From Amphiscolops sp. MND2022 (lineage: Eukaryota): DNA of 64,000 nucleotides. This document shows, in pieces, positions 1,781 through 63,200 of this stretch. Within the stretch, counting starts at the first letter, position 1; each line of letters starts with the position of its first letter. Under the pieces are notes generated by a model that saw only the letters and a program-made list of their open reading frames with translations, was not told where the DNA came from and searched no databases. The stretch is taken from positions 46,438,001-46,502,000 of the forward strand of contig OZ076411.1 of assembly GCA_964187785.1 (NCBI GenBank), given 5' to 3'. Position numbers and translations under genes: made by a program.

Positions 1781-4700
1781 TAAATCGAGGACTTACTAAA
1801 TTACATTTGAACACTTTGCAGCAGTTTCTAGAGCTGGCTGACGTCTCAGCGTAATTGCTTCTCGGCTAAAAACAAAACAATTGATGCTCTTCGGGCGTTT
1901 GGGTTGCCTTCGCCAGATGCCGACCAACCGACCGATAGTAACTTCTATCACCTTGGAAGTCCCGACAGAATTTTCTCTTTATAAACTATTTCGCTCCGAA
2001 TGACCTTTGGAAAACCTCATTGAGCTTTTTTTGTTTCGAAAAAGTACAGACAAAAGTGTCTTGACAAAGTGGTCTTTTGTCAATCAAATTTTTAGAACGG
2101 CTTTTTTACCATAGCTTTCAAACTTCCAGCATGTGATCTACATCCAGCATGTGATTTCGTTACTCCAGATCAAAAGAATTTTAATCTCTGATTCTGCGTT
2201 CGAGTTTTTTCTATGTGCTGCATGACCACAGAATCCGAAAGGTTTCCACAAAACATCTCTGAAATACCAATAATTGTGCCACTTTTCAGGAGTAACGAAC
2301 CAGTGAACTTTTCTAGATTAGGTGTCTTTTTCTGTCAAGCAGTTAGTTTTTAAAAACTGCGATCATTCTCATTTGGATGACAAATGTCGAAGGTAAGCAT
2401 CTAAGAAGCAGTGCAAAACAAAGACAGCGAACGTTTATTTTGAAAAAGTCCTAATATCAATGCAAAAGTATCGGGAACCAATTCGTTGGAGTTGCAATTG
2501 ATTCTGTAATATCACCTAGTTGACTGAAAGAAATGTCTCATGAAAGTAAGTGTTGATTGGTCCACTTTTCTTTTCTTATTCTCATACCACAGCATTGTCA
2601 GTTTTCTTTGCCACTGGGAATAGCGTTGTTGGCGGATCAACACAGTCGTTTGATTTCTTTAGTTTTTAGTCGGCGCGTTTTCCTTTTAAGGAAAAATGCC
2701 CGACTATAGCAGTGACCTTTTTTTTTCTTCAGACTACAATCCTCACACTGATCGGTCCACTTTTTACAATTCTCAATTCTGCGCAGAGCACCTGAGGCCA
2801 AGTCCGCCCAAGGCAAACTTTACTCCAAAGGGTCCCCCCTTTCATTTTTTACTTTTTCAAGGAAACATACAAAACCGGACGTTTGGATTTTTTTCGGAAC
2901 TGTGCGACTTTTTTTCGAAATTTCTTTTCGAAAACAAAACGGAATGTTTGTTAATAAATACAGAAGGGTCCCCCCTTTTACATTTTTCGGCACTATGCGA
3001 CTTCTTTTGAAAGAAATTTTTTTTTTCAAAAATTTCAATTTTTTTCCAAAAAAAGTGTTTTACGCTTTTTGAGCCTTAGATATGGCGCCGACTTTAGACG
3101 TTCTCGTCTTGTTAAGGGTTAAGATGGTCTACTGAAATCTGGTTGCCCAGCTTCAAAGTGTGGCGGTACAACTCTTCAGAACTTATCTGCCCTAGAGCAA
3201 CGCGAATTGCTTTCTGGTAAAGTTCCGTCCTCACTGGTTCAGCAGCCACTCTTGGTCCGGGTTTCAGGGCTTTTCGGGGATCGATCATTACATTACCCAC
3301 TTCGAGCGACAAAAATAGAGCCTTTGCTATGTTTTTGGTAAACTCACTTGGAGTGTCTCCAGCTATGTTTGTCAAATCTTTGCCGCTGTAGATCACTTTC
3401 TGTTTTTCAACGTTTTCTGAGTCGACTGCGGTTGTCGAAAGTCGAACCTGCTTTTCTGCTGACTTTCCAGTCAACTCCCGCAAAGGTTTTCTGGTAATTT
3501 TCATAGTTTCTTCTTGAAGCTCCAAAGATTTGTCCAGATGCTCTTCCATAAATCGAGGACTTACTAAATTACATTTGAACACTTTGCAGCAGTTTCTAGA
3601 GCTGGCTGACGTCTCAGCGTAATTGCTTCTCGGCTAAAAACAAAACAATTGATGCTCTTCGGGCGTTTGGGTTGCCTTCGCCAGATGCCGACCAACCGAC
3701 CGATAGTAACTTCTATCACCTTGGAAGTCCCGACAGAATTTTCTCTTTATAAACTATTTCGCTCCGAATGACCTTTGGAAAACCTCATTGAGCTTTTTTT
3801 GTTTCGAAAAAGTACAGACAAAAGTGTCTTGACAAAGTGGTCTTTTGTCAATCAAATTTTTAGAACGGCTTTTTTACCATAGCTTTCAAACTTCCAGCAT
3901 GTGATTTACATCCAGCATGTGATTTCGTTGCTCCAGATCAAAAGAATTCTAATCTCTGATTCTGCGTTCGAGTTTTTTCTATGTGCTGCATGACCACAGA
4001 ATCCGAAAGGTTTCCACAAAACATCTCTGAAATACCAATAATTGTGCCAGTTTTCAGGAGTAACGAACCAGTGAACTTTTCTAGATTAGGTGTCTTTTTC
4101 TGTCAAGCAGTTAGTTTTTAAAAACTTCGATCATTCTCATTTGGATGACAAATGTCGAAGGTAAGCATCTAAGAAGCAGTGCAAAACAAAGACAGCGAAC
4201 GTTTATTTTGAAAAAGTCCTAATATCAATGCAAAAGTATCGGGAACCAATTCGTTGGAGTTGCAATTGATTCTATAATATCACCTAGTTGACTGAAAGAA
4301 ATGTCTCATGAAAGTAAGTGTTGATTGGTCCACTTTTCTTTTCTTATTCTCATAACACAGCATTGTCAGTTTTCTTTGCCACTGGGAATAGCGTTGTTGG
4401 CGGATCAACCAGTCGTTTAATTTCTTTAGTTTTTGAGGGTTAAGATGGTCTACTGAATTCTGGTTGCCCAGCTTCAAAGTGTGGCGGTACAACTCTTCAG
4501 AACTTATCTGCCCTAGAGCAACGCGAATTGCTTTCTGGTAAAGTTCCGTCCTCACTGGTTCAGCAGCTACTCTTGGTCCGGGTTTCAGGGCTTTTCGGGG
4601 ATCGATCATTACATTACCCACTTCGAGCGACAAAAATAGAGCCTTTGCTATGTTTTTGGTAAACTCACTTGGAGTGTCTCCAGCTATGTTTGTCAAATCT

Positions 4701-4870
4701 TTGCCGCTGTAGATCACTTTCTGTTTTTCAACGTTTTCTGAGTCTACTGCGGTTGTCAAAAGTCGAACCTGCTTTTCTGTTGACTTTCCAGTCAACTCCC
4801 GCAAAGGTTTTCTGGTAATTTTCATAGTTTCTTCTTGAAGCTCCAAATATTTGTCCAGACGCTCTTCCAT
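1781..4870. repeat. Direct tandem duplication: unit 1 = 1781-3548, unit 2 = 3549-4870
   Basis: taaatcgaggacttactaaattac starts both units. Lengths 1768 vs 1322 differ by exactly the 446-bp insertion at 2668-3113. The junction shows a short AT microhomology. Confidence 0.92.
2668..3113 (-). mobile_element. Non-autonomous Helentron-like (HINE/DINE-1-like) element, copy with an empty site in the duplicate
   Basis: Present in duplication unit 1, absent from unit 2 (empty site 4434/4435). Subterminal inverted AGTCGGCGC motifs, 3' hairpin, insertion in a T-run, no clear TSD. Confidence 0.75.
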
Positions 4871-5430
4871 TTCGACATTATGTGAAAAAAAAACGGTTCC
4901 ACGCCTTTCACTGAACAAATCAAGCCTTAGGTTAGAACTCCCACTATAATTTACCCCTTTTTCAACGGTGACAAAATGAATAAAAACGCCAACCATTGTG
5001 CCTAACCTGTTTCTCGCGATCGACGTGAAAGCTCTGCAAATTCCGTCATTCATCAACGTACTGGTTTCCTGCACTTCAGGCGAAGAGTTGCTGTTTACAT
5101 CGGATTCAGTATCTGCTTCAAAGTACGATTCCAAAACATGCGGGGAGCTACATGCGACAGGAGCTACATTGTTCATATCCAGTTGTGCTAGTGCACTCTC
5201 GTGTGCGTTGGTAGTTTCCAGTTTGGCCACGCTAATGTCGCCTTTCTCAATCTCATTATCCAAGTAAACCACATCTTTCAATTGCCTTTAAGAGCCCTTG
5301 TATATGAAATGCCCTCTCGGAAATTATTGATCGCAACCTCGTCACCTTTTTCAAGCTTCATTTTATCGAAGTTGCTAAAATTCGTCGGCCAACCTTTGAT
5401 TGTGGCTCGAGGGTTGAAAAAGTGCCATCA
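4280..5430 (-). pseudogene. Transposon-associated BEN-domain-like ORF, frameshifted near 5282; partial copy at 3112-3548
   Basis: 333-aa ORF contains PSEFTKNIAKALFLSLEVGNVMIDPRKALKPGPRVAAEPVRTELYQKAIRVAL..YRHTLKLGNQ, a BEN-like helical pattern. An upstream frame (KLEKGDEVAINNF...) joins by a 1-nt shift. BEN call is by eye. Confidence 0.55.
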
Positions 5431-23000: not shown

Positions 23001-26000
23001 GGTCAAATTGTCCTAAAAAAGATAAGCATTAGGTTACAAAGACAGTTTATAAAATTCTAACCAAGTTGTATGCTACTTACGGTTAGATTGGCGGCGATAG
23101 TTCAAGCTATTATCCCACCAGTTATCACTGACAGTGTTAGTGGCATTGAAGTCTTTAGAACAGCCAGGCTCACCGGGGTCGTGTACATCGATATCTGTGA
23201 TTTCATTTGTCTTCCTATCTTCACTGGCTTTTCCAATCGTCTCTGATTCATTTGGTAACGCGTTATCACAAGCATCAGTTCCATCTGGCAAGTTTTCTGA
23301 ATAACCATTGAGATCTTCCTCTATTGTTGATGATCGATTTTCTTTGTTTGATTGATCAGGCTCTGCTTCTGCCTCAGGCAAATCGTGAACTTCGACTTCC
23401 AAAATGTCTCCATTCTGAGCTGAGCTTTTCGTCGTTTCAGTTTCTTCTACCGTTGTTGGGATTTTTCCGTTGGGAATAGTCTTTGAACTCACTTTTGGAC
23501 TCATCTTCACATCTTTTGTGCTACCTGTTTCACTGATTATGTCTTCATTTCCAATTAATGGTGCTGATTTTAGTGACGATTTATTGAAGGAGTCATGAGA
23601 AGTTTCATGGCATGGTTCCTGGTCGTCGTCTGTGTTCACTTTTTGTTTGTTTCTGGGCAATGTAGCTGTTTCCCAGGGTTCTTCCTCAGGTATAACACTT
23701 ATCCTGTTTTGCATCTTGATAGTACTTGGAGGCTCAGGCGCGGAAATATCAAAACTGTTAGCGTTCTGTATTTGTCTGTATTCTTCAATGCTACATAGTT
23801 TTCCCAGCAGGTTGAGCCTTTCAACGTACGACATCTTTATACCGTACACGTTCTTGAGTTTGTGGTGCCATTTTTTCTCCCAATAGAAGGAGACAACAAA
23901 GCGATGCCCGTCAATGCCGTCCAATTGGTAAACATTCATGGTGCCCTCGAACTTTTTCCATTCCCCGCCCATAACTTTTTTGTATTGCGTGATTGTCTCA
24001 ATACTGGCGACATGTTCGCTCTCGTCGAGAATGGAGGAGATCCGTTCATCTCTGACTAGATACACCAGAGTCCCGAGGATTTTGGAATTGGCGGTGCTCG
24101 GTCTGTAAAGCGTTGGAATAGCGTCGGCATCCTGGAACCGACTTGGTGACATTTGTATTCAGATAATTTCTCTATAACCCTATATTAACTGTGGCGTTTA
24201 TCTATAAGTTATATTCCTCGCAGTGGTATGCAAACTAGACTAGCGTGATAGTTTTGTATACCGGGCGGTTGCAAATGAAAGAAGGTCAATTAAGGATTCA
24301 AGCTAATGGATTCGCCCAGTTTCTATTGGCAATAAGCATGGATAAAAGAAGGTTCACTAGGTGTACATCTAATGTAGCTAGCGAAGCTCGGCATGGGCCA
24401 CGAGTTGACTAAGTTGTGTGAAAGTTAAGTTGCGGACTGTGCTATCTTTTACGAATGTGTTTTGCCATATTTGTATGTACTCAGACTGTTTGATTATGTT
24501 TAGCTGTTTTATTTAAGTTGCCCAAATGTTCGTAATGTTTGATTGTATCTTAATGATGTCTTAATGCTCTTAGTTGAACTGCTGCCTGCCAACTGAAAGC
24601 CGATTGTAGTCGATTGACGTCGTTTAATGTTCCGTGTAATCTATCTAATTTAGTCTCGTCAAAATGCATCCAAGAGCCCGCGTGATTTTCGAAGTTGCCC
24701 AGCGTTGCTTACCCAACCGATTAGGGCTTCTTTTATTAAAGATTTTATGAATGATCCTTCCTTGATTGATACTGGGTTCTTCAAAGCATTCTACCAATCT
24801 TTGCGACTACCGATGTGAAGTATTTGAATGCCAGGGCATCCATCATTGCCATGAGTTGAAGTAGACATTGAGAAATAGATCAATTTTGAGACCACTAATT
24901 CGGTTGGTGAAATAACTCAAATATACTTGCTGCAAATGAATGGTCGTTGCCTGACTTCGGAATAGATGAATAAGTTATTGGTAGTTTTTAAAACCTATTG
25001 TCGAATTTACCTTTAATTTAAACATGCTTGAAATGTATATGAATTCTTGAATGAAATCATGTTTAGATACCGCAGCGCCGACTGAAAATGCAGTTCCAAC
25101 AGCCATGGGTAACCCAGAGATGCTGAATGACAGTCCACCTTCTTTGCCTGAATCGCCCAGAATAGAGCCTCCTTCGGATTCTGAAATAACGTCGCCCCAG
25201 GACGAGGCGGACGACGATGATAGAGTTGTAGGTGGTGCATCTTTACCCGCTTTCAGACCTACTACTCCATCTAGCGAAGGGAGTGATGACGATATTCCTG
25301 AACCCACGAAGCCAGTATCAGAAGCAACACAGGCTCAGAAGAATCAGAGGATCTTCGATGACTCAGATTCCGATGATTCCTTGTTCGGCAACTCAACGAA
25401 AGTTGACAAACCGCAGTTAGTTTTCGTGCTACAAATTTTGAGTTGAGCATTCATTTCGAATCTTCCGTCATAGTGTAAAATATATTCCTTTTTCTTTCAG
25501 AAATGCCCCAGCCAGAGCACCAAGTACAAACTCCACAGCATCGAAAGTTAGTTTTTACGGTTGGAAGAAATAACGCCAAAGACTGCTTATTGGCTTTAAT
25601 GTCTAAAGAAGTCCTTCAACCAATTGATCTAAGTGAAAACCGAATGTAAATTTATTGTATACATTTGTCATATGAATCGACCTTCCCCCTTCCGGGCAGC
25701 GTCGCTTCGCTTCTGCGTTTAGGTCACTAAATGTATGTGATAAAGATTGTTTTCTTCGGACGTTATTTTACCATTCTGTTTTTAGTCGGCGCTTTTGAAG
25801 AAAAGTGCCCGACTCTTACAGTAGGTAGTTTTTTAGACGCGTAAAGTCCACATTTTTGTTCAACTTGAACTATGCATGTCCAAAACCTACTGAAAATGTC
25901 AGAACCTCGTGCAAAACAAAGCCGACGTCCAGAACCTCTAAAACATACTAAGGATCCAAACTTTGGCTATCTTAGTGTTTTTACACTTGCGATAAGCAAG

Positions 26001-48324: not shown

Positions 48325-51300
48325 TTAGAGAAAATCTAGGGAACAAATGGAGAACTTGGATGTATCTCTTGGCATACAAGCAGAGAACTTCTTGGTTTTG
48401 GTGAGACAAATAGCAGCTCCGTCGAAAGCGGTCAAAATGCGGGTAGATGAAGTATAGAACATAGACGGATGTGTCTGTGAAGTCACCACCATTTTTTCAT
48501 CCACGCTGGTGTAGCTGTTCACATTGCCAAAATCTTGTACAGAAACTATAGCGCTTTTGATGAAGCCCATGTGCATGAATGTTGCAGCGAACTCCTGAGC
48601 TCCAACATCTGGGTTCTGTTCCTCAAAGAAGTTCCACAGGAATTCTAGTTCTGCTTCATCTCTTGGGTACGTTAAGATGGCGCCACGATTGCGACATTCC
48701 TCAACTTGGCGCGTGAAGTTCCAACCGGGTTCTGAAAACCTGAGTTGAAAGAAGCATCGTTTGAAGTTGAAATTTAGCTCCCCGTTCTCAGCCGCACAAA
48801 CAGTCCGGTACTGTGTATTCTCATGTCTGTGAATGACGTCATTTTGTTTGAGATTCGCTAGTTTAACAAGTTTCAGATATTCTTTCGAAGAATGACCTTG
48901 TCTCAAGAGTCTTTCATTCACGACACTAGTTTGCCCGAATGTTGCATATTGCCATGATAGAGTCGAAACTGTCAGCGATAGTAAAACGCCAAAGATTATA
49001 GCCACTGAAACCCTTTTCGCTTTTCCACAAAGAGTGAAAAACTTATGTTGGTTGTCAGTTATCTCGGCCTGTCCTGTTTTGGGAACAGTGTCCGAACCCT
49101 CAACGGGTTTATACAGAATTGTACCCATCAGCTTCTTGAAAAAAGCAGCATGGTAGTCTTGGAATTTCTGCAGAACCACCAAATAGACTAGCACATTCAG
49201 CTGCGAGTACAAGAGTTGCAGCGGAGTCTTCACAACAAAAAAGTACGAGAGAAAGCTGTCCATGGAGCTGCCGTAACTTTCTTTGTTCCCGGGGTTTCTG
49301 AATCCCAAGAAGCCAAAAACATAATTGGGAGTCCAGCAAACTATCCAAAAAATCCAGCTTAGTGCGAACGCATAGGACAAAGCACGATTGCGTTCGATGC
49401 GTTTTTCTTGCGCCAGTAGACTTTGAATCACGTTGTAATAGAAGAAGCCGGAAAGTGAGGCCGGTATCAAGAAAAACAGAACCATCTCAACGATATTTCT
49501 CGCAGTGTAACGTGAAACCAGCGAATTGCATTTGACTAAAAACTCGTAGTCAAAAAAGTGGGCCCTGCAAACAAAAAGATGAAGGCTTTCTAGTTATGAT
49601 TGCTAATTTTATTAATTGAAAGAATATCGAAGCGTTTCGATTGATAGAATCTGTAGGAACGGGTCCGTTGAACGGTTTTTCATTGACAAAAACATGATCA
49701 ACTTTCATCCCTGCGATAGTTCTGTAATAACTAAAACGGTTAGAATTTGTGACGGTTATGTTTTTTGTCTGAAAGAACTCCTCATATTGATAATCGTCGT
49801 TATTTTCTGACACGTGATTGCGAGATATACACGCATTCATTGTATAGTGAATGTTTTTGTAAAACACGTAGTAACAGATCTTGAATATTGTTTTTCCGTT
49901 AATGAAAAAAAACTGGTTAGAGAACCGTATTATGTTTACGGTGTTAAACATCCCTTGAAAACTGGTTTCCCCTATGTTCAAATTTTTAATCAATAAAAAA
50001 GCTTTCAACGATGCAGCTCCCAAACTCAAAAATAGCCTTTTTGAGCAAATCAAAACAACATTTTCTCATTCTCTAAATTTTGTCGAACAACGTTTCTTGC
50101 ATTATAATTTCATAACTTTCGTTTAAAAGTTTTTCTGATACTATGAAAGAGGCTGCTTTCGGTTGTCAAAAAAGTCATCGGACATTTCAATCCCCCATCA
50201 GTTGCGATGCGATGGTCCATTGATGAACTTGCTTGTGATCTCTTCTTAAGTAAGTAATGCTAAGAACTGTTACTGTGGAAAAAATAGAATCCTATATCTT
50301 CAGTTTGTTTCCCTGTTCTCGGATATTATATTTTAGGCAATGCCTTCTGGAGGAAACTTCTGCTGTAATAGCAAGTAAATAGTTTTAGTTTACAATATTA
50401 ACAACTAGTGGATATGATTGCTCCTATGAACCTACCAAAGGGTAACCGTTTCCTGTTTCTCAACCGAATGAACTGATTTTCCGCAATTTGTTGCCAGTTT
50501 ATTTTATAAAAATGCTTCTAATTTCGAGAGATGTTCCAATTCAGAAGTATATACAAACGCTTCATTGTATTCATTGGTTTAAATTGTTGGGAACATATTT
50601 CTTATTCTCCCCTCGCTGAGGTACACTTTGTTTTTGCTTATCCCCCCAGCATGAAAACACTTTTTTTTGAAAAAATTCTTGCACGAATGAAAGAATTGTA
50701 TATGGTTAAGTCTATTAAGAGGATTGTCTCTACAGCTATTTTGTCGCTCCCAGCTAACAATGTCTGAAATAGAAAAAATCACGTCTGGAACGAGCCAAAA
50801 TCGTACAGATAGACCCCTATTTCAACGCAAAATTTTTCCAAAATAAAATAAAATGAGAGCTAATTTTAACAGTGAGTCAATCAATGTATGAGGAAGGATT
50901 ATGTCGGCATCAAATATTTCATTGAATTAAAGTCTCATCGCAAACAATGTCGACATAAAAGTGTTTGCACCGTGCTTCGTATATACGCCCAAATATATAC
51001 GTGGCCAAATGGGGAACAAATTAGGAACATTGTCCAATTTTTGTTCGAAACGAATTTTAACTAAACCTGGGATTGTCGACGCCTTGTAGATAGGTACGAT
51101 AATTCTGGTTGAAGACCAAATCGAGAGTGCTGCAGATGAAGGCCAGACATACCACGAGAACAATCACCACTGCTATGTTCCGATGAAAGTTCTCCTTTGT
51201 TTGGTAGAGAGGTTTGCAAACGAAGAGGTATCTTTTCAGAGATCGGATTACGTTGCATTGTGTTGGAACTACGTAAATAAGTGAAGAGAAAAGAGCAGTT

Positions 51301-54300: not shown

Positions 54301-55449
54301 AGCAGGGTTGCCGAGTGTCGCCAAATAGATAGAAAGATCAATCCCGGCAATGCAAGGTCTTTGTCTGAATGAGTAAAACTCGGGAAAATGAAGTACCTAA
54401 CGTTAAAGTGAATTTGGTTGAGCAAAAACTTACATAAAATTTCCCAACGTTTTTAGGGAGTTTCTCTGGTTATTTTCTCCGATAAAAGGATTCCAGGTAC
54501 CCATGTTTTTGTTTTTGAGCTTTGAGCGGTGCACCGACGTAAGCCGTTCTAATTTTTTTGCTTTGGGTTTCTCCCTGATTTGATAAAATCCGATCTCTTA
54601 CCTGAACCCAACAGTGGCTAGCATACACACCCCCGTGCTATACTCATTCAAAAGCAGTCTCAAATGAGTCACAATGCAAGATGTCCGTCTATCCAATACC
54701 ATGATATCGACCAATTGTGAGATTCTCACGACGTACGATTTCATGATCATGTGTCTGCTATTTCTGTAGGACTCGATATTCGAGTAGAGCTCAATTTCAC
54801 TCACCAAATTTGCAAATCCAGGCCCGATTAAGTCACAAATAGCTTGAAACATGACTGGAAACATGTGCCAGCAGCGCAATTCTTCAGTGGCCATTAGGAA
54901 TGCAATGAGCAACGCGTTTCCTAAAATGGCGACATTATTTCTGATGGCAATTCAACATGAAAAAGACGAATGCGTTTTAATGGTTATCTCGCAACCAACA
55001 AACTACAAAACATGAAGATGATTCTCTAATTATATAAAAATTTTTGCAAAATTTAGCAAGTTTTTTAAAATAAATTTTTCAAAACGTTTTTTTTTGTTCC
55101 CACAACCAAAAAATCATTTGAAATTAAACAAATTGTCAAATTGTCCGTGGAACATTTCCTGATATTTTTAAATGAAATTAACAATCGAGTTTTTCACAAA
55201 CGTTTTTTCGGAAGGCTTTCTCTAGGTTGAGGCTTAGAAACTGACACAAAGCAATAAGCGCCGATAAAAAACAGTATGCTTACCGAGAATGCAATATGTG
55301 CTTAAGCAACAAGTGACGATTTGCCGGAATTTCATGAACAGCATGAATGCGCCATCGAGATTCAGGCCTGCTCCTGACAGTATAAGATTGACGTTCGAAA
55401 ATGACAGATCATACCAAGTGAGGGTCTCCTCAAAATGGGTGATGTTCAT
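48325..55449 (-). CDS. Rhodopsin-like (class A) GPCR fused to an extra TM helix and a C-terminal C-type lectin-like domain
   Basis: Exons 55449-55284, 54920-54602, 51268-51067, 49564-48325. TM1 YCIL-GNALLIA, TM2 FQAICDL, TM3 SLKRYLFVCKP, TM5 LFFLIP..FY, TM6 CWTPNY, TM7 LYSQLNVLVY, TM8 VSVAIIFGVLLSLTVSTLSW, then a six-Cys CTLD. The exon 2/3 junction is out of phase (2 vs 1): missing microexon, indel or pseudogene. Confidence 0.8.
52430..53148 (-). mobile_element. Degenerate Helentron-like repeat in GPCR intron
   Basis: Right end gggcaccgacttgggccggtgccgacttgttt; agaactattttggacagttcaggtgtatcgaaaaa is shared with the 19434-19462 segment. Confidence 0.5.
53466..53930. mobile_element. Foldback element with modular inverted arms
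   Basis: Left arm repeats (ca)attgagtccc about 5x; right arm repeats gggactcaat about 7x; unrelated central spacer. Confidence 0.75.
54173..54550 (-). mobile_element. Degenerate Helentron-like repeat
   Basis: tttttaagtcggcg left end; gagctttgagcggtgcaccgacgtaagccgttc right end. Confidence 0.5.
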
Positions 55450-55613
55450 TTCGGGTGCCTGTGAAGTAGTCCATTCACTAGATGTACTAGTGAAAGAAGT
55501 TGTCGATGTTGAGGTGCCGGTGAATCACGGTTGTTACTCTTTTATCTACACCCTATGCTTCAAAACTGTTCTACCGTTTTCGTGAGTTTAATAGCTGCCA
55601 AAATCTCATTACA

Positions 55614-59556: not shown

Positions 59557-60274
59557 TTAAGCTCCGATAAAATGAAAAATTAAGTAATAAAATGGCGAAA
59601 ATGATAAATTAAAATAATTCAAAATGGCGGAAATAACAATTTGAGTAACTAAAATAACGGAAGTCCCAATTAGGACAACAAACAAAATGGAACAAGATGG
59701 TAAACCGAAATAGGGTAAACGGCCGTAATCGGCCAATAATTCCATAAGTTGTAAATAATGAAGTAATCTTTGTACATTTCGCTGGCAGACTCCATGTACA
59801 GAATAAATATGTAAATCATCCCATAAAATTAGTCTGGTAATAATCTTCAGCCACGAACTCCAACTCTTCAATTCTTTATTTTGAATTCCAATTCAATTCC
59901 TTTTATTTTAATTGCATTTCCTCGTCCATATTCATCCAGTCAGTCTTCATCGTCAAACTATCCTTTCTGTCTTCAATCCCTCCAGCCAGTCTTCTCTTCA
60001 GAGTATCTCTGTTTCTCCCCTTCAAGCCAAGTCCGGCCAATTTCCTTCGTGGCAGCAATCCGATTGGAGCATTTCCCGTTTCGTCCCAGCTCAGAATGTC
60101 TTCAACTGAAGGTTGGTTTGTTTCTTTTTTGAACTCAAATTTAACTTGATCAGGGCTAAATTCGTTCACAAAATGCTTCCTGTTTCCATCAATAGATGCG
60201 TGATAACACATTTCATTCGAATTTTCATAGCACTTCCGGAAGTTTTCTAACGCGGTAAAATGGATTTTTTTCAA
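59557..60274 (-). other. Short or stop-interrupted orphan ORFs (123 aa and 104 aa)
   Basis: ORFs 59903-60274 and 59557-59871; protein-like text continues across stops (RIEELEFVAEDYY). Confidence 0.3.
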
Positions 60275-63200
60275 GGAAGCTCACCGCCAAATTTCATCTC
60301 ATTCTGTTTAGAAAACCAGAACATTGACGAATCACAGATTCGAAACACCTCCTCTTCAGACAATTTCACCGAGATCCCTCAACGTCCTATTCCAATAACT
60401 ATGCCAAGGTCTAGTCCCGATCCAATTGTTTCGTCTTCTCCAACTCCATCCACTACCATTGTCATGTCAACAGCGGCGGTAACAGAAGGAGTCCAGGACT
60501 CAGTCACTCCCTCTCCTTTCAGTGTTGATAGTGATTTTGATGTCACGGCATACGCTGATGAGAAAGTTCTGCTTCTCGCACGGGCCCAGGAACAGGGAGA
60601 GAGACAGATTGCTAAGAGTTCCGGAATTGGGGAACAGGAGGCTGAAGAGAGTGCCCCTGAAGACCCGCCCACTGTCGGGGGTAAACCCCAACCTTCTACG
60701 TCGCTCTTCCAAACCAGCACTCCAACCAAGGACTTGCACAGTGAGTCTGCTGGGTTGGATCTATCACAGCTAGTAGCCGGTCTCACCATTGCTCCTTCCA
60801 CTCAGACGGAATTGCCAGAATTGTTGACAACTTGCGGAACTTCTGCCAACATGTCAGCAGTATCATTCCTTCAGCATGAGACTGATGAGGGTTCATCTAT
60901 ATGTGATGCCCCTAAATTGCCGACTGGAGTCACAGACATAGTATATTTGGACGACGTGACTGGGACTGAGGAAACCGGTGACACTTCCAGCCAGGCAAGC
61001 GGACCAGCTCTATACAGTTTCCAGCCAGTAGGAAATGCGGCAGAAACTGCCGGGGAGTCGTCAGTTGACACTCCTATTCATCGTTCAGATGACATGCGTC
61101 CGTCAACATCAACATCTGTAGGGCGAGATTCTGGCGTCAGGGAGCTCTCCGGTCGCAGCCGGGCCATTTTGAAACAGTACTTCGATCAGGATGCTACCAC
61201 CATCAATTTCCCTCTCGGTCACAGAACAGTGGCTTTTACTGAGCCACAAGTGTATCATCTTTTGAGGGTTCTTACGGATGAAACCCTGAAGATGTCCTTC
61301 ACTGCCATGGAACAGATGGTGATTGGGGCGGTTCGCGGAGCGCCAGTCACTTCCAGTTCTCGAACTGACCATTTCCGAATCAGGCCAAGAGCCCAAACTC
61401 CCGGACCTGGATTTCATAGTGATACTGATGGCAGCCCAGGCTCTGAAGATTTTCCTGAGTCAGGAACTGATACGTCTGTCGGAACAAGTTCAGGACAAGA
61501 GGACAGAGGGTTAGACTGCTCCAATGACACAGACAGTTCCGGAGAAATGGCTCTCATCTCACAGGCCTTCAAGGAGCCTTTCAGACCTGTTTCAGCTTCT
61601 TGCGGGACTACTCAAAATGATCCTTCCCAAGCAGACTCCGAATCAGCAGAACAGTCAAGCCTTGATGCCACTCTTTCCGAGTTACGGACTCAAACTTCTC
61701 CTGCCCCGCCTTTAGTTTCGAGTTCGGGTAAAGCGCCAAAGCGGAAACAGCGAAAACAGACTCGAGGTGTCCCTATGAAAGAGGAGTTCTTCTCCAAAAT
61801 CGGATGGACGCGCTCGTTTATTTCCGGACCAGCAGATCCGCTTCACAATCCGTATATGGTATGGTGCCATATATGCAAAAAGAATATCTCTGTGAAGACG
61901 AAGGGCACTTTAGAGATCCTGCGACACCACAGGACGGAGAAGCACCTCCGACGAGATCAAAGATGGCGCTACGAGCACCTCAAGAGTGTCCACCCCGTGT
62001 CCGGAAAGGTGCAACATCGGGTGAGAGGCCGCAATGGGAAGATCCTCTCGGAGATCGAGTTGGCTAAGGAGATGCGCCACTTTATGCATGTTGAGCTGGT
62101 GGACATCGGAGAACGCTTCCCCTTCTATGATGATTTCATAAAAGGAACAACCACCACACTCGTCACCCCTGAAGCAAGGACTAAGACGCAGATTCAACTT
62201 ATTGGGAACTTCATACAGCAACTTGGAGATATTGGACTGCTCCGCAAATTGTGGTCCCAACTAGGCTCTTTGACCAATTACCAGACCAGTTACTGCGACT
62301 TCGATTGGGGCGAGGAAAGGATTTCGGTAAGTTCTCTATTGGGTACGCGCACTGCTCGTGGAAAATCAAAGTCCTCCACGCATTTCGTAACTCTTCTTTT
62401 CCTTTTCAGGCCATCTTCCAGCATATTTTCAATTGTGCAATGAACGATTTAGCAAATCAGATTGCTACCACACAGCACTTTGCCATCGAGTTTGAAGATC
62501 AGGGAGTGAACAGACTCATGTCCGTCAAATTCTGGAAGGGCAACACCCTCTGCCGAGTCTACGTGTGCCGGAGTGGGCTTCCTTCCTCTGATCTTACTGG
62601 AGAGTTGGGGTCTCTCTCTCGACTTCTCTCGGTAGTGTCTACCAAGGCCGATATAGTCGCTTGTTCCGGGTGTCCAGTGGAGCTGATCCGGACTATCGAC
62701 TACAGTGCTTTCTTCCCTCGGGCTGTCCAGAGTTGCTTTCGCTTCGAGCACCTGCAACTCCAGAAGATGATGCACAAACCCACTTTCAGTGTGTTTGGCA
62801 GAATAGACTTCTTCTCCGTTCTGAAGTGCCTCATAGTTTCTCTTGGAGCCGCTACCGACGAAGACTGGGTCCTGCAATCCCCCGAACTTGCACGAGTTAG
62901 TATATTAAGTTCACACATGAGGCGTGAAAGGTTAGGGGGGTAGGTTCGGACAAAAGACAATTCGGGTTCATTTAGGCCATCGATTCCTGCAAACTGGACT
63001 TACCGAGTCTACCCAACCTCTGCCGGGAGCTCGTGAAACATTGGAAGGCAGTCCGGCAGTACCTGACGTCGCATACTCCACACCAAGGAATGCAAGGGGT
63101 CCACAATCAAGTGCAGAGCTTCGAGTGGTCTCTTATCTGCGACTCTTTCTTCGTCGTCAAGTTGGAATTCTTCCAACGCATAATCAGTGATTGTGAGTAT

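Follow-up and report, generated by a model that had tools for sequence, protein, structure and literature searches.

The 64,000-nucleotide stretch of Amphiscolops sp. MND2022 analysed here (contig OZ076411.1 of assembly GCA_964187785.1, positions 46,438,001 to 46,502,000; numbered 1-64000 in the following and referred to as the window) carries on its minus strand an apparently intact four-exon gene. Its predicted product is a class A G protein-coupled receptor (GPCR) that continues, within the last exon, into an eighth transmembrane (TM) helix, a stalk and a C-terminal C-type lectin-like domain (CTLD). This last exon (exon D) is a single open exon whose frame is open back to 49593 and closes with the stop codon at 48327-48325; it begins behind a strong acceptor, TTTTTGTTTGCAG/G (TTTGCAG/G at 49565/49564; here and below, a slash within letters marks the exon border), phase-matched to exon C, and comprises 412 codons after that acceptor. 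Its elements succeed one another in the order second extracellular loop (ECL2) with the conserved cysteine, TM5, third intracellular loop (ICL3), TM6, TM7, helix 8 with linker, TM8, stalk, CTLD and stop codon (Table 1), and it aligns with paralog P0002 across its whole length at 36% identity. A first-pass annotation of this DNA had read one uninterrupted exon that runs from TM5-TM7 through a linker, KAKR and an extra helix to a stalk and a CTLD, and all of these elements and their coordinates were borne out. Since the fusion of TM7, TM8 and CTLD lies within one exon here, and since at least 44 paralogous proteins carry all three within one open reading frame (ORF), it is not a gene-model artefact—as that annotation had also held.

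Gene structure at the locus

With the first exon of a paralog as tblastn probe, the upstream exons were recovered in the window from two matches, one to TM1-TM3 (54927-54601, E 6e-18) and one to the end of TM3 plus TM4 (51257-51093, E 1e-8). All borders of the resulting four exons are of the GT-AG type with matching phases, and the joined coding sequence spans 1890 nt, that is, 629 codons, without an internal stop. The 629-residue protein aligned to the single-ORF paralog P0018 in one BLASTP high-scoring segment pair (residues 6-628, E 1e-74), which makes the exon model collinear with relatives that lack introns.

For the acceptor of intron 2 we chose the second AG, the only one with which the reading frame continues and the C-x7-R-Y spacing is that of the family; the alternative acceptor TAG/TT was rejected, as it shifts the frame and loses TM4. 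Likewise rejected was an extension of the tblastn match upstream of exon C (CNVIRSLKRY) as the end of TM3, which is polar, whereas the CMLATVGF of exon B is hydrophobic and fits the family. At the other end of the gene, exon A holds an N-glycosylation sequon at N2. Upstream of its first ATG the frame stays open for 25 more codons (55450-55524, minus strand), which are S/T-rich (GTSTSTTSFTSTSSEWTTSQAPE) like the N-tails of the paralogs; this open stretch contains no ATG and no evident acceptor, and the start codon is therefore uncertain.

As to intron positions, intron 1 (55284/54920) lies in TM1 and intron 2 (54602/51231) inside the R codon of FRY; both are absent from P0002 and from the single-ORF paralogs. 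The intron ahead of ECL2/TM5, by comparison, is common to the window gene and P0002 and is of phase 2 in both. The family thereby comprises at least three gene structures, namely four exons, two exons and intronless.

Table 1. Exons and protein elements of the receptor gene in the window (splice borders marked by a slash), with the free-standing relative P0003 in the last line
Feature	Position	Strand	Description
Exon A	55284-55449	-	first in-frame ATG (MNITHF), N-tail, first half of TM1; donor CTCG/GTAAGC, phase 1
Exon B	54602-54920	-	second half of TM1, TM2 (QAICDLIGPG), first extracellular loop, TM3 to F-R of FRY; acceptor TTTTAG/GA; donor TTCAG/GTAAGA, phase 2
Exon C	51067-51231	-	completes R codon of FRY, second intracellular loop, TM4, start of ECL2; acceptor GAAAAG/A at 51232/51231; donor CCCAG/GTTTAG, phase 2
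Exon D	48325-49564	-	ECL2 with conserved cysteine to stop codon
TM5	49494-49414	-	LIPA proline; by hydropathy
ICL3	between TM5 and TM6	-	basic, QEKRIERNR
TM6	49383-49306	-	CWTP at 49338-49327
TM7	49254-49171	-	YSQLNVLVY; NVLVY at 49197-49183
Helix 8 and cytoplasmic linker	49012-49170	-	53 residues, helix-8-like QKFQDYHAAFFKKL, polar, ends in KAKR
TM8 (predicted)	48955-49011	-	VSVAIIFGVLLSLTVSTLS, 19 hydrophobic residues directly after KAKR
Stalk/neck	48799-48954	-	52 polar residues; at least the last 13 predicted helical
CTLD	48328-48798	-	long-form, 157 residues, six cysteines
P0003	L007:4001-4666, L008:4001-4666		221-residue ORF starting at the TM8 equivalent (MRIISLLATITLL...), with only stalk and CTLD besides

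The lectin-like domain, the eighth helix and the receptor core

An AlphaFold2 model of the C-terminal domain (window positions 48831-48328), built with an alignment of 57 family sequences, reached a mean predicted local distance difference test (pLDDT) score of 92.4 and a predicted template modelling score of 0.87, and its elements follow the order of a long-form CTLD behind a neck helix. Foldseek returned 322 PDB matches to this model at E<=1e-3 (best E 4e-6); the top 50 were all CTLDs, and the top CTLDs include DC-SIGN, CD23, langerin, LOX-1, CL-K1, lithostathine, dectin-1 and NKR-P1B. VIA-align gave Z scores of 14-15 with root-mean-square deviations of 2.1-2.8 Å over 120-135 residues, and 533 chains at Z>=8. 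Among the clusters of the AlphaFold Database (AFDB), all matches fell on a CTLD-sized segment and the named ones were nearly all CTLD-containing proteins; none of these cluster matches was a GPCR with a C-terminal CTLD.

The cysteines tell the same story. Six of them, at ORF residues 230, 244, 264, 360, 370 and 381 (residues 473, 487, 507, 603, 613 and 624 of the joined model), stand at the expected places of the long-form pattern C0, C0′, C1, C2, C3, C4, with the last three falling on C2, C3 and C4 in a HMMER alignment to CD69, and all six are invariant or at least 90% conserved among the 57 family members. When searched against PDB sequences, the 57-sequence family profile retrieved almost only CTLD chains, at borderline E values of 0.01-1 (a tetranectin-derived binder, CD69, CLEC4A4, tetranectin, CLEC5A, SP-D and MBP-A). 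The Pfam profile Lectin_C was weakly matched by 11 of the 57 members (best E 0.0015), and in the language-model-based ESM Atlas it accounted for 92 of the 100 clusters nearest to the window domain. As modelled, the C-terminal domain has the CTLD fold, an assignment that rests on fold and cysteine pattern, not on a sequence profile.

Further along the domain, we noted an NFT sequon at residue 499, a YPR motif, and MHMGF where WIGL is expected. Read against the CD69 alignment, the window CTLD has neither EPN/QPD nor WND: the residues before C2 are STRILTAFDGAAIC (...TAFDGAAIC) and those before C3 are KKFSAC, at sites where the family consensus has F-x-G-P-x-x-C and L-x-x-C. Because the EPN/QPD and WND positions are not kept, we file the domain in the CTLD superfamily, not among the classical Ca-dependent lectins. 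Its core (beta1, alpha1, the YPR motif, alpha2 and beta5) is conserved across the family, and entropy is highest in the long-loop region—the usual binding face of CTLDs—and in the loop after alpha2, with 6.7 and 4.6 inserted residues per sequence, respectively. The first-pass annotation had proposed a long-form CTLD, on which AlphaFold2, Foldseek and VIA-align agree (the Pfam check of the window copy was itself negative; see below); the six cysteines stand exactly where it had put them, and it had read both the MHMGF and the lack of EPN/QPD correctly.

Between TM7 and the CTLD, the TM8 segment has a mean Kyte-Doolittle value of 2.14, the second highest in the whole protein after TM4, and 42 of the 44 family proteins with both flanking parts show a hydrophobic peak above 1.6 in this region (mean peak 2.29). 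Lysine and arginine in the 15-residue flanks average 3.98 before and 1.86 after TM8 across the family (n=44), and 38 of the 44 members have more of them before than after, although these members are kin and not 44 separate trials, so that the Wilcoxon p value for the bias overstates independence; the window protein itself has four before and one after. An N-x-S/T sequon recurs at the start of alpha1 in 36 of the 57 members, and the window protein has only two sequons, one in the N-tail and one in the CTLD (N499). The charge bias, the conserved cysteines of the three disulfides that the domain would need, the recurrent sequon and the TM8 hydrophobic peak together point to a CTLD placed outside the cell, and we read TM8 as a predicted N-in/C-out, signal-anchor-like helix. 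The extra hydrophobic helix of the first-pass annotation thus corresponds to a conserved segment with a positive-inside bias, as far as prediction from sequence goes. Behind it, stalk length is nearly constant across the 44 fused proteins (39-54 residues, mean 49), and helix 2-14 of the modelled domain construct forms a neck that superposes in VIA-align on those of tetranectin, langerin and CL-K1.

Ahead of TM8, the hydropathy of the window model shows seven segments. Of the class A motifs, R3.50 and the Y of FRY, W6.48 and P6.50 (CWTP), P5.50, N7.49, Y7.53 and the cysteines of TM3 and ECL2 are kept, while D/E3.49 is changed to F (FRY) and P7.50 to V (NVLVY); position 3.49 is hydrophobic in most family members. 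Exon D matched Pfam 7tm_1 (PF00001) with 21.9 bits (E 1.4e-4; gathering cut-off 30.5) and exon C did so weakly (E 0.004, profile positions 84-128); exon B had no 7tm_1 match. A phmmer search of the PDB with exon D returned CCR2, RXFP4 and FPR2 at E 1e-4 to 1e-3, with weak matches also to CCR6 and the bradykinin B1 receptor. Among 15 long paralogs, nine matched 7tm_1 (best E 7.9e-12), and the family alignment keeps T-G-x-C...A-x-x-R-Y, the ECL2 cysteine, P5.50, a W-rich TM6, Y-S-x-x-N in TM7 and the helix-8 KPF. The class A fold was modelled on paralog P0018, which is 29% identical to and collinear with the window protein, rather than on the window protein: its helical bundle has pLDDT 73-92 and matches at least 500 solved class A chains (template modelling score by target 0.62-0.78), including beta1AR, H1R, NMUR2, NK1R, APJ and OX1R. 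The class A assignment, which the first-pass annotation had made as well, is firm at the family level, and the receptor is an orphan, divergent class A GPCR without an assignable subfamily.

The paralog family and its place among known receptors

A two-sequence profile (exon D plus P0002) searched against 1.84 billion representative proteins retrieved 203 representatives at E<=1e-3; of these, 116 reach E<=1e-10 and 49 reach E<=1e-30. In many of them a single ORF of 600-700 residues comprises N-tail, TM1-7, TM8, stalk and CTLD (full architecture in P0018, P0032, P0154, P0155, P0159, P0102 and P0106); other family ORFs begin near TM5, like exon D. All 30 representatives that we sampled are unnamed and 29 are present only in ENA, the exception being P0133, an ordinary 399-residue GPCR from Logan. 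Pfam matches exist in only some of the family members and are mostly weak. All five that were traced (P0001, P0002, P0102, P0018 and P0003) lie on different contigs of ERZ25074608, the window's own assembly; a search for a second family gene in the window found none. In the first-pass annotation, novelty had hinged on there not being many homologues with this architecture: many there are, but all of those traced are unannotated ORFs of the same assembly, and the objection applies only narrowly. This is a large family in this genome that annotation has overlooked.

Among the seven full-length paralogs, identity is 29% in the 7TM core and 31% in the CTLD. Linker, TM8 and stalk have diverged to 10-19% (linker about 10%, stalk about 12%), and only their length and hydrophobicity are held. 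A closer pair allowed constraint to be measured: P0003 (Table 1) is 73% identical to residues 193-423 of P0002, and the Nei-Gojobori ratio of nonsynonymous to synonymous substitution (dN/dS) of the two is 0.22 over TM8-CTLD (0.24 for TM8 plus stalk, 0.21 for the CTLD; dS 0.70). The TM8-CTLD module is therefore under purifying selection in this pair. Within 4 kb upstream of P0003 there is no 7TM homology, and judged from its sequence this ORF is likely to encode a type II lectin receptor that stands on its own and is related to the fused genes, or else to be a 5′-truncated copy that is still constrained. The closest relatives of the window gene, P0012 (69% identical over TM5-TM7) and P0021 (59% over the CTLD), are short ORFs that both end prematurely; they seem to be pieces of one broken paralog, as expected in a birth-and-death family.

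We searched for the same architecture elsewhere. Against AFDB clusters, the full-length P0018 model found ordinary GPCRs aligned only up to residue ~435-500, and no cluster with both folds save for one entry that could not be read. That entry, A0A821KE43 (rank 17), is a 908-residue 'GPCR family 1 profile domain-containing protein (Fragment)' aligned to residues 29-699 of the P0018 model, and is a possible lead to a like architecture in another organism. ESM Atlas matches split into separate 7tm_1 and Lectin_C sets with none holding both, and 378 pattern sites in JGI metagenome contigs (alignment A1) yielded no relative. A word-indexed protein search with a 15-sequence full-length alignment gave only P0018 and one fragment among the matches listed, but it missed known members and is thus silent on other species. 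Within the open full-text literature searched, no paper described a class A receptor that an eighth helix extends into a C-terminal extracellular domain; the papers on related subjects gave bare domain counts or placed lectin domains N-terminally, on receptors of the adhesion type (PMC7308585, PMC8687355, PMC5013795, PMC11797021, PMC12909245, 10.1101/2025.10.31.685756). The first-pass annotation had known of no class A example, and none surfaced in AFDB clusters, ESM Atlas or the literature searched. We read the architecture as new and apparently undescribed; its modules are known.

The nearest likeness is to type II lectin receptors (CD23, DC-SIGN/DC-SIGNR, langerin, LOX-1, dectin-1, NKR-P1), which share with the window protein a basic cytoplasmic side, an N-in/C-out anchor, a helical neck and a C-terminal long-form CTLD, as well as the cysteine pattern C0-C0′, C1-C4, C2-C3 (the pairing here is predicted) and the best structural matches; LOX-1, dectin-1, CD69 and NKR-P1 lack the Ca/sugar motif, too. 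Unlike in these receptors, however, a complete class A GPCR takes the place of the 'cytoplasmic tail' in the window protein and an eighth helix serves as the anchor; YPR stands where L-A-S-I is usual and MHMGF where WIGL is, and sequence similarity is borderline (profile E 0.01). From class A GPCRs of the peptide/chemokine-like and aminergic kinds it has CWxP, R3.50-Y, P5.50, N7.49...Y7.53, the TM3-ECL2 cysteine pair, helix 8 and a glycosylated N-tail (here a sequon), yet its C-terminus is predicted to lie outside in a folded domain, which would close the tail into a fourth intracellular loop. Enzymerhodopsins with eight helices (rhodopsin guanylyl cyclase, rhodopsin phosphodiesterase) illustrate how an extra helix on a 7TM protein flips the side of a terminal domain; they differ in being microbial-type rhodopsins whose extra helix is N-terminal and whose flipped end is cytosolic, and are unrelated in sequence and function. 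At the N-terminus, lectin-fold domains are familiar from adhesion-type receptors and from polycystin-1 (see the domain tables of PMC8687355 and PMC11797021). Adhesion GPCRs (latrophilin with its RBL lectin, invertebrate ones with CLECT) and polycystin-1 with its N-terminal CTLD resemble the window receptor in having a lectin-fold ectodomain on a multi-pass signalling core, whereas their cores are of class B2 or the polycystin type, they undergo GAIN/GPS autoproteolysis, and their N-terminal lectin requires no extra helix.

Two family traits stand beside these comparisons. The paralogs P0018, P0020 and P0079 (contigs of ERZ25074608, e.g. L004:3001-5100) have Tyr/Asp-rich tails past the CTLD (YDYDY..., EYDYDYGDYDD...) that resemble acidic motifs of the tyrosine-sulfation type, while the window gene ends right behind the CTLD without such a tail. 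The N-termini of P0034, P0154, P0045/P0155 and P0018 have M-G-x-x-x-S/T at the start or at an internal candidate start; this resembles the N-myristoylation consensus, which is odd for the extracellular glycosylated N-tail of a GPCR, and may be due to chance. The remainder of the window is gene-poor: Rfam gave no match at gathering score across 1-64000, and ten other ORFs of 154-727 residues, including 60260-62440 (plus strand), 23076-24152 (minus) and 4283-5281 (minus), had no Pfam match at E<=0.01.

An eight-pass reading and its alternatives

We consider it probable, with some reserve, that the gene encodes a 629-residue eight-pass receptor. Behind its class A GPCR part would come a cytoplasmic loop of some 50 residues, TM8 as an outward-leading membrane pass, a helical neck again of some 50 residues, and an extracellular CTLD that would act as a recognition module in cis. 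In effect, a whole GPCR stands where a type II lectin receptor has its cytoplasmic tail. The first-pass annotation had likewise seen a type II lectin receptor appended to a 7TM receptor with the C-terminus returned to the outside, and the K/R bias, the cysteines and the sequon support this predicted topology. That annotation had also suggested a tethered co-receptor or ligand-capture module, and a role of this kind is a proposal here as well. Under such a design, the CTLD would probably use its hypervariable long-loop face to recognise a macromolecular ligand—a protein or another surface—independently of Ca and sugar; the neck may oligomerise, as it does in langerin, tetranectin and collectins; and binding could be relayed to the 7TM bundle through packing of TM8 or contact with the extracellular loops, the CTLD working in cis with the bundle. 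The bundle, in turn, would signal inside via G protein or arrestin, with the former C-tail closed as a fourth intracellular loop. As the family is large and divergent, it may constitute a diversified recognition repertoire, chemosensory or devoted to immune or self-nonself recognition.

Several observations weigh against this proposal, in addition to the kinship of the members behind the charge bias. The gene model is a prediction from genomic sequence. The acceptor of intron 2, being the second AG, lies 37 nt past a TAG behind a weak pyrimidine tract, and the ancestral start codon seems to be lost or to lie in an exon not located; because of these two features, the window copy could be mis-spliced or decaying. 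Lectin_C (PF00059) did not match the window domain even at E 10, and the C-terminal domain of P0002 was likewise without a Lectin_C match in Pfam. Scored exon by exon, the window pieces all stay under the 7tm_1 gathering score, and with F at 3.49 and V at 7.50, G-protein coupling is not assured. The predicted TM8, finally, rests on hydropathy and charge bias, and the TM8-stalk helix (439-494) in the AlphaFold2 model of the full-length paralog has pLDDT <50.

The same eight-helix design could also serve a different end, with the CTLD or the stalk mainly regulating the 7TM pocket of its own chain. Either would then be a tethered lid, an agonist or an inverse agonist, comparable to the Stachel in adhesion GPCRs or to the LGR hinge, and an external ligand, if any, would bind the bundle itself. 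With its fixed length (~49 residues), the stalk would hold the CTLD beside the bundle, the 7TM part and the CTLD diverge at an equal rate (~30% identity) as expected of co-evolving partners, and the Ca/sugar motif is absent. We nevertheless regard a mainly internal role as unlikely, given that the most variable and insertion-rich parts of the CTLD are surface loops that usually serve foreign ligands, and that P0003, with TM8, stalk and CTLD only, is intact and constrained, which suggests that the TM8-CTLD module can act alone.

Alternatively, the family architecture may be real and the window copy decaying or non-functional, on its way to becoming a pseudogene in a family that evolves by birth and death. 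To the ancestral S/T-rich N-tail that is open yet lacks an ATG and to the second AG at intron 2, one may add the loss of P7.50 and of the LKPF proline, a closest paralog apparently split into P0012 and P0021, and the location of the gene in a transposon-rich, gene-poor stretch. Decay is nonetheless improbable in our view: 629 codons in four exons are open with correct phases, all (near-)invariant residues of the CTLD are kept, as are those of the 7TM alignment save for the LKPF proline, and NVLVY and LQKFQDYH, which also occur in the intact paralog P0002, are therefore traits of a subfamily and not of decay. Very doubtful is the idea that the fused ORF gives two products, a 7TM receptor and a type II lectin receptor, by linker cleavage or internal initiation: a free-standing TM8-stalk-CTLD ORF (P0003) and a poorly conserved linker would suit it, but the linker has neither a conserved cleavage motif nor a conserved internal Met, and an in-frame fusion kept in at least 44 paralogs at ~30% identity would be difficult to account for if the joined protein were of no importance.

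Returning to the eight-pass receptor with its extracellular recognition module, we put forward a wider proposal, tentatively and in the knowledge that it may well fail: that the family represents an undescribed class of animal receptors, in which a class A GPCR gained an eighth helix displaying a C-terminal recognition domain and expanded into a lineage-specific repertoire of ~100 genes. Not the N-terminus or the helical pocket but the lectin-fold domain would capture macromolecular ligands (microbial, dietary, self/non-self) and drive G-protein signalling in cis. Such a class would go back to a GPCR gene that fused with a gene for a type II lectin receptor, and P0003 may be among the surviving free-standing relatives of the latter.

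To our knowledge, GPCR textbooks describe every class with the N-terminus outside and the C-terminus in the cytoplasm, and with large ligand-binding ectodomains always N-terminal. The present family departs from this layout via its extra helix, and would represent a second evolutionary route to a receptor that combines an ectodomain with a 7TM core. A C-tail closed into a fourth intracellular loop would matter for the way in which G proteins, GPCR kinases and arrestins engage the receptor, and receptor engineering may find a useful scaffold in the eight-helix design. C-type lectin receptors and GPCRs, two recognition systems that are among the largest in animals, would here be joined in one polypeptide. 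The strong expansion of the family in one lineage suggests a repertoire with a chemosensory or innate-immune role, overlooked by standard annotation.

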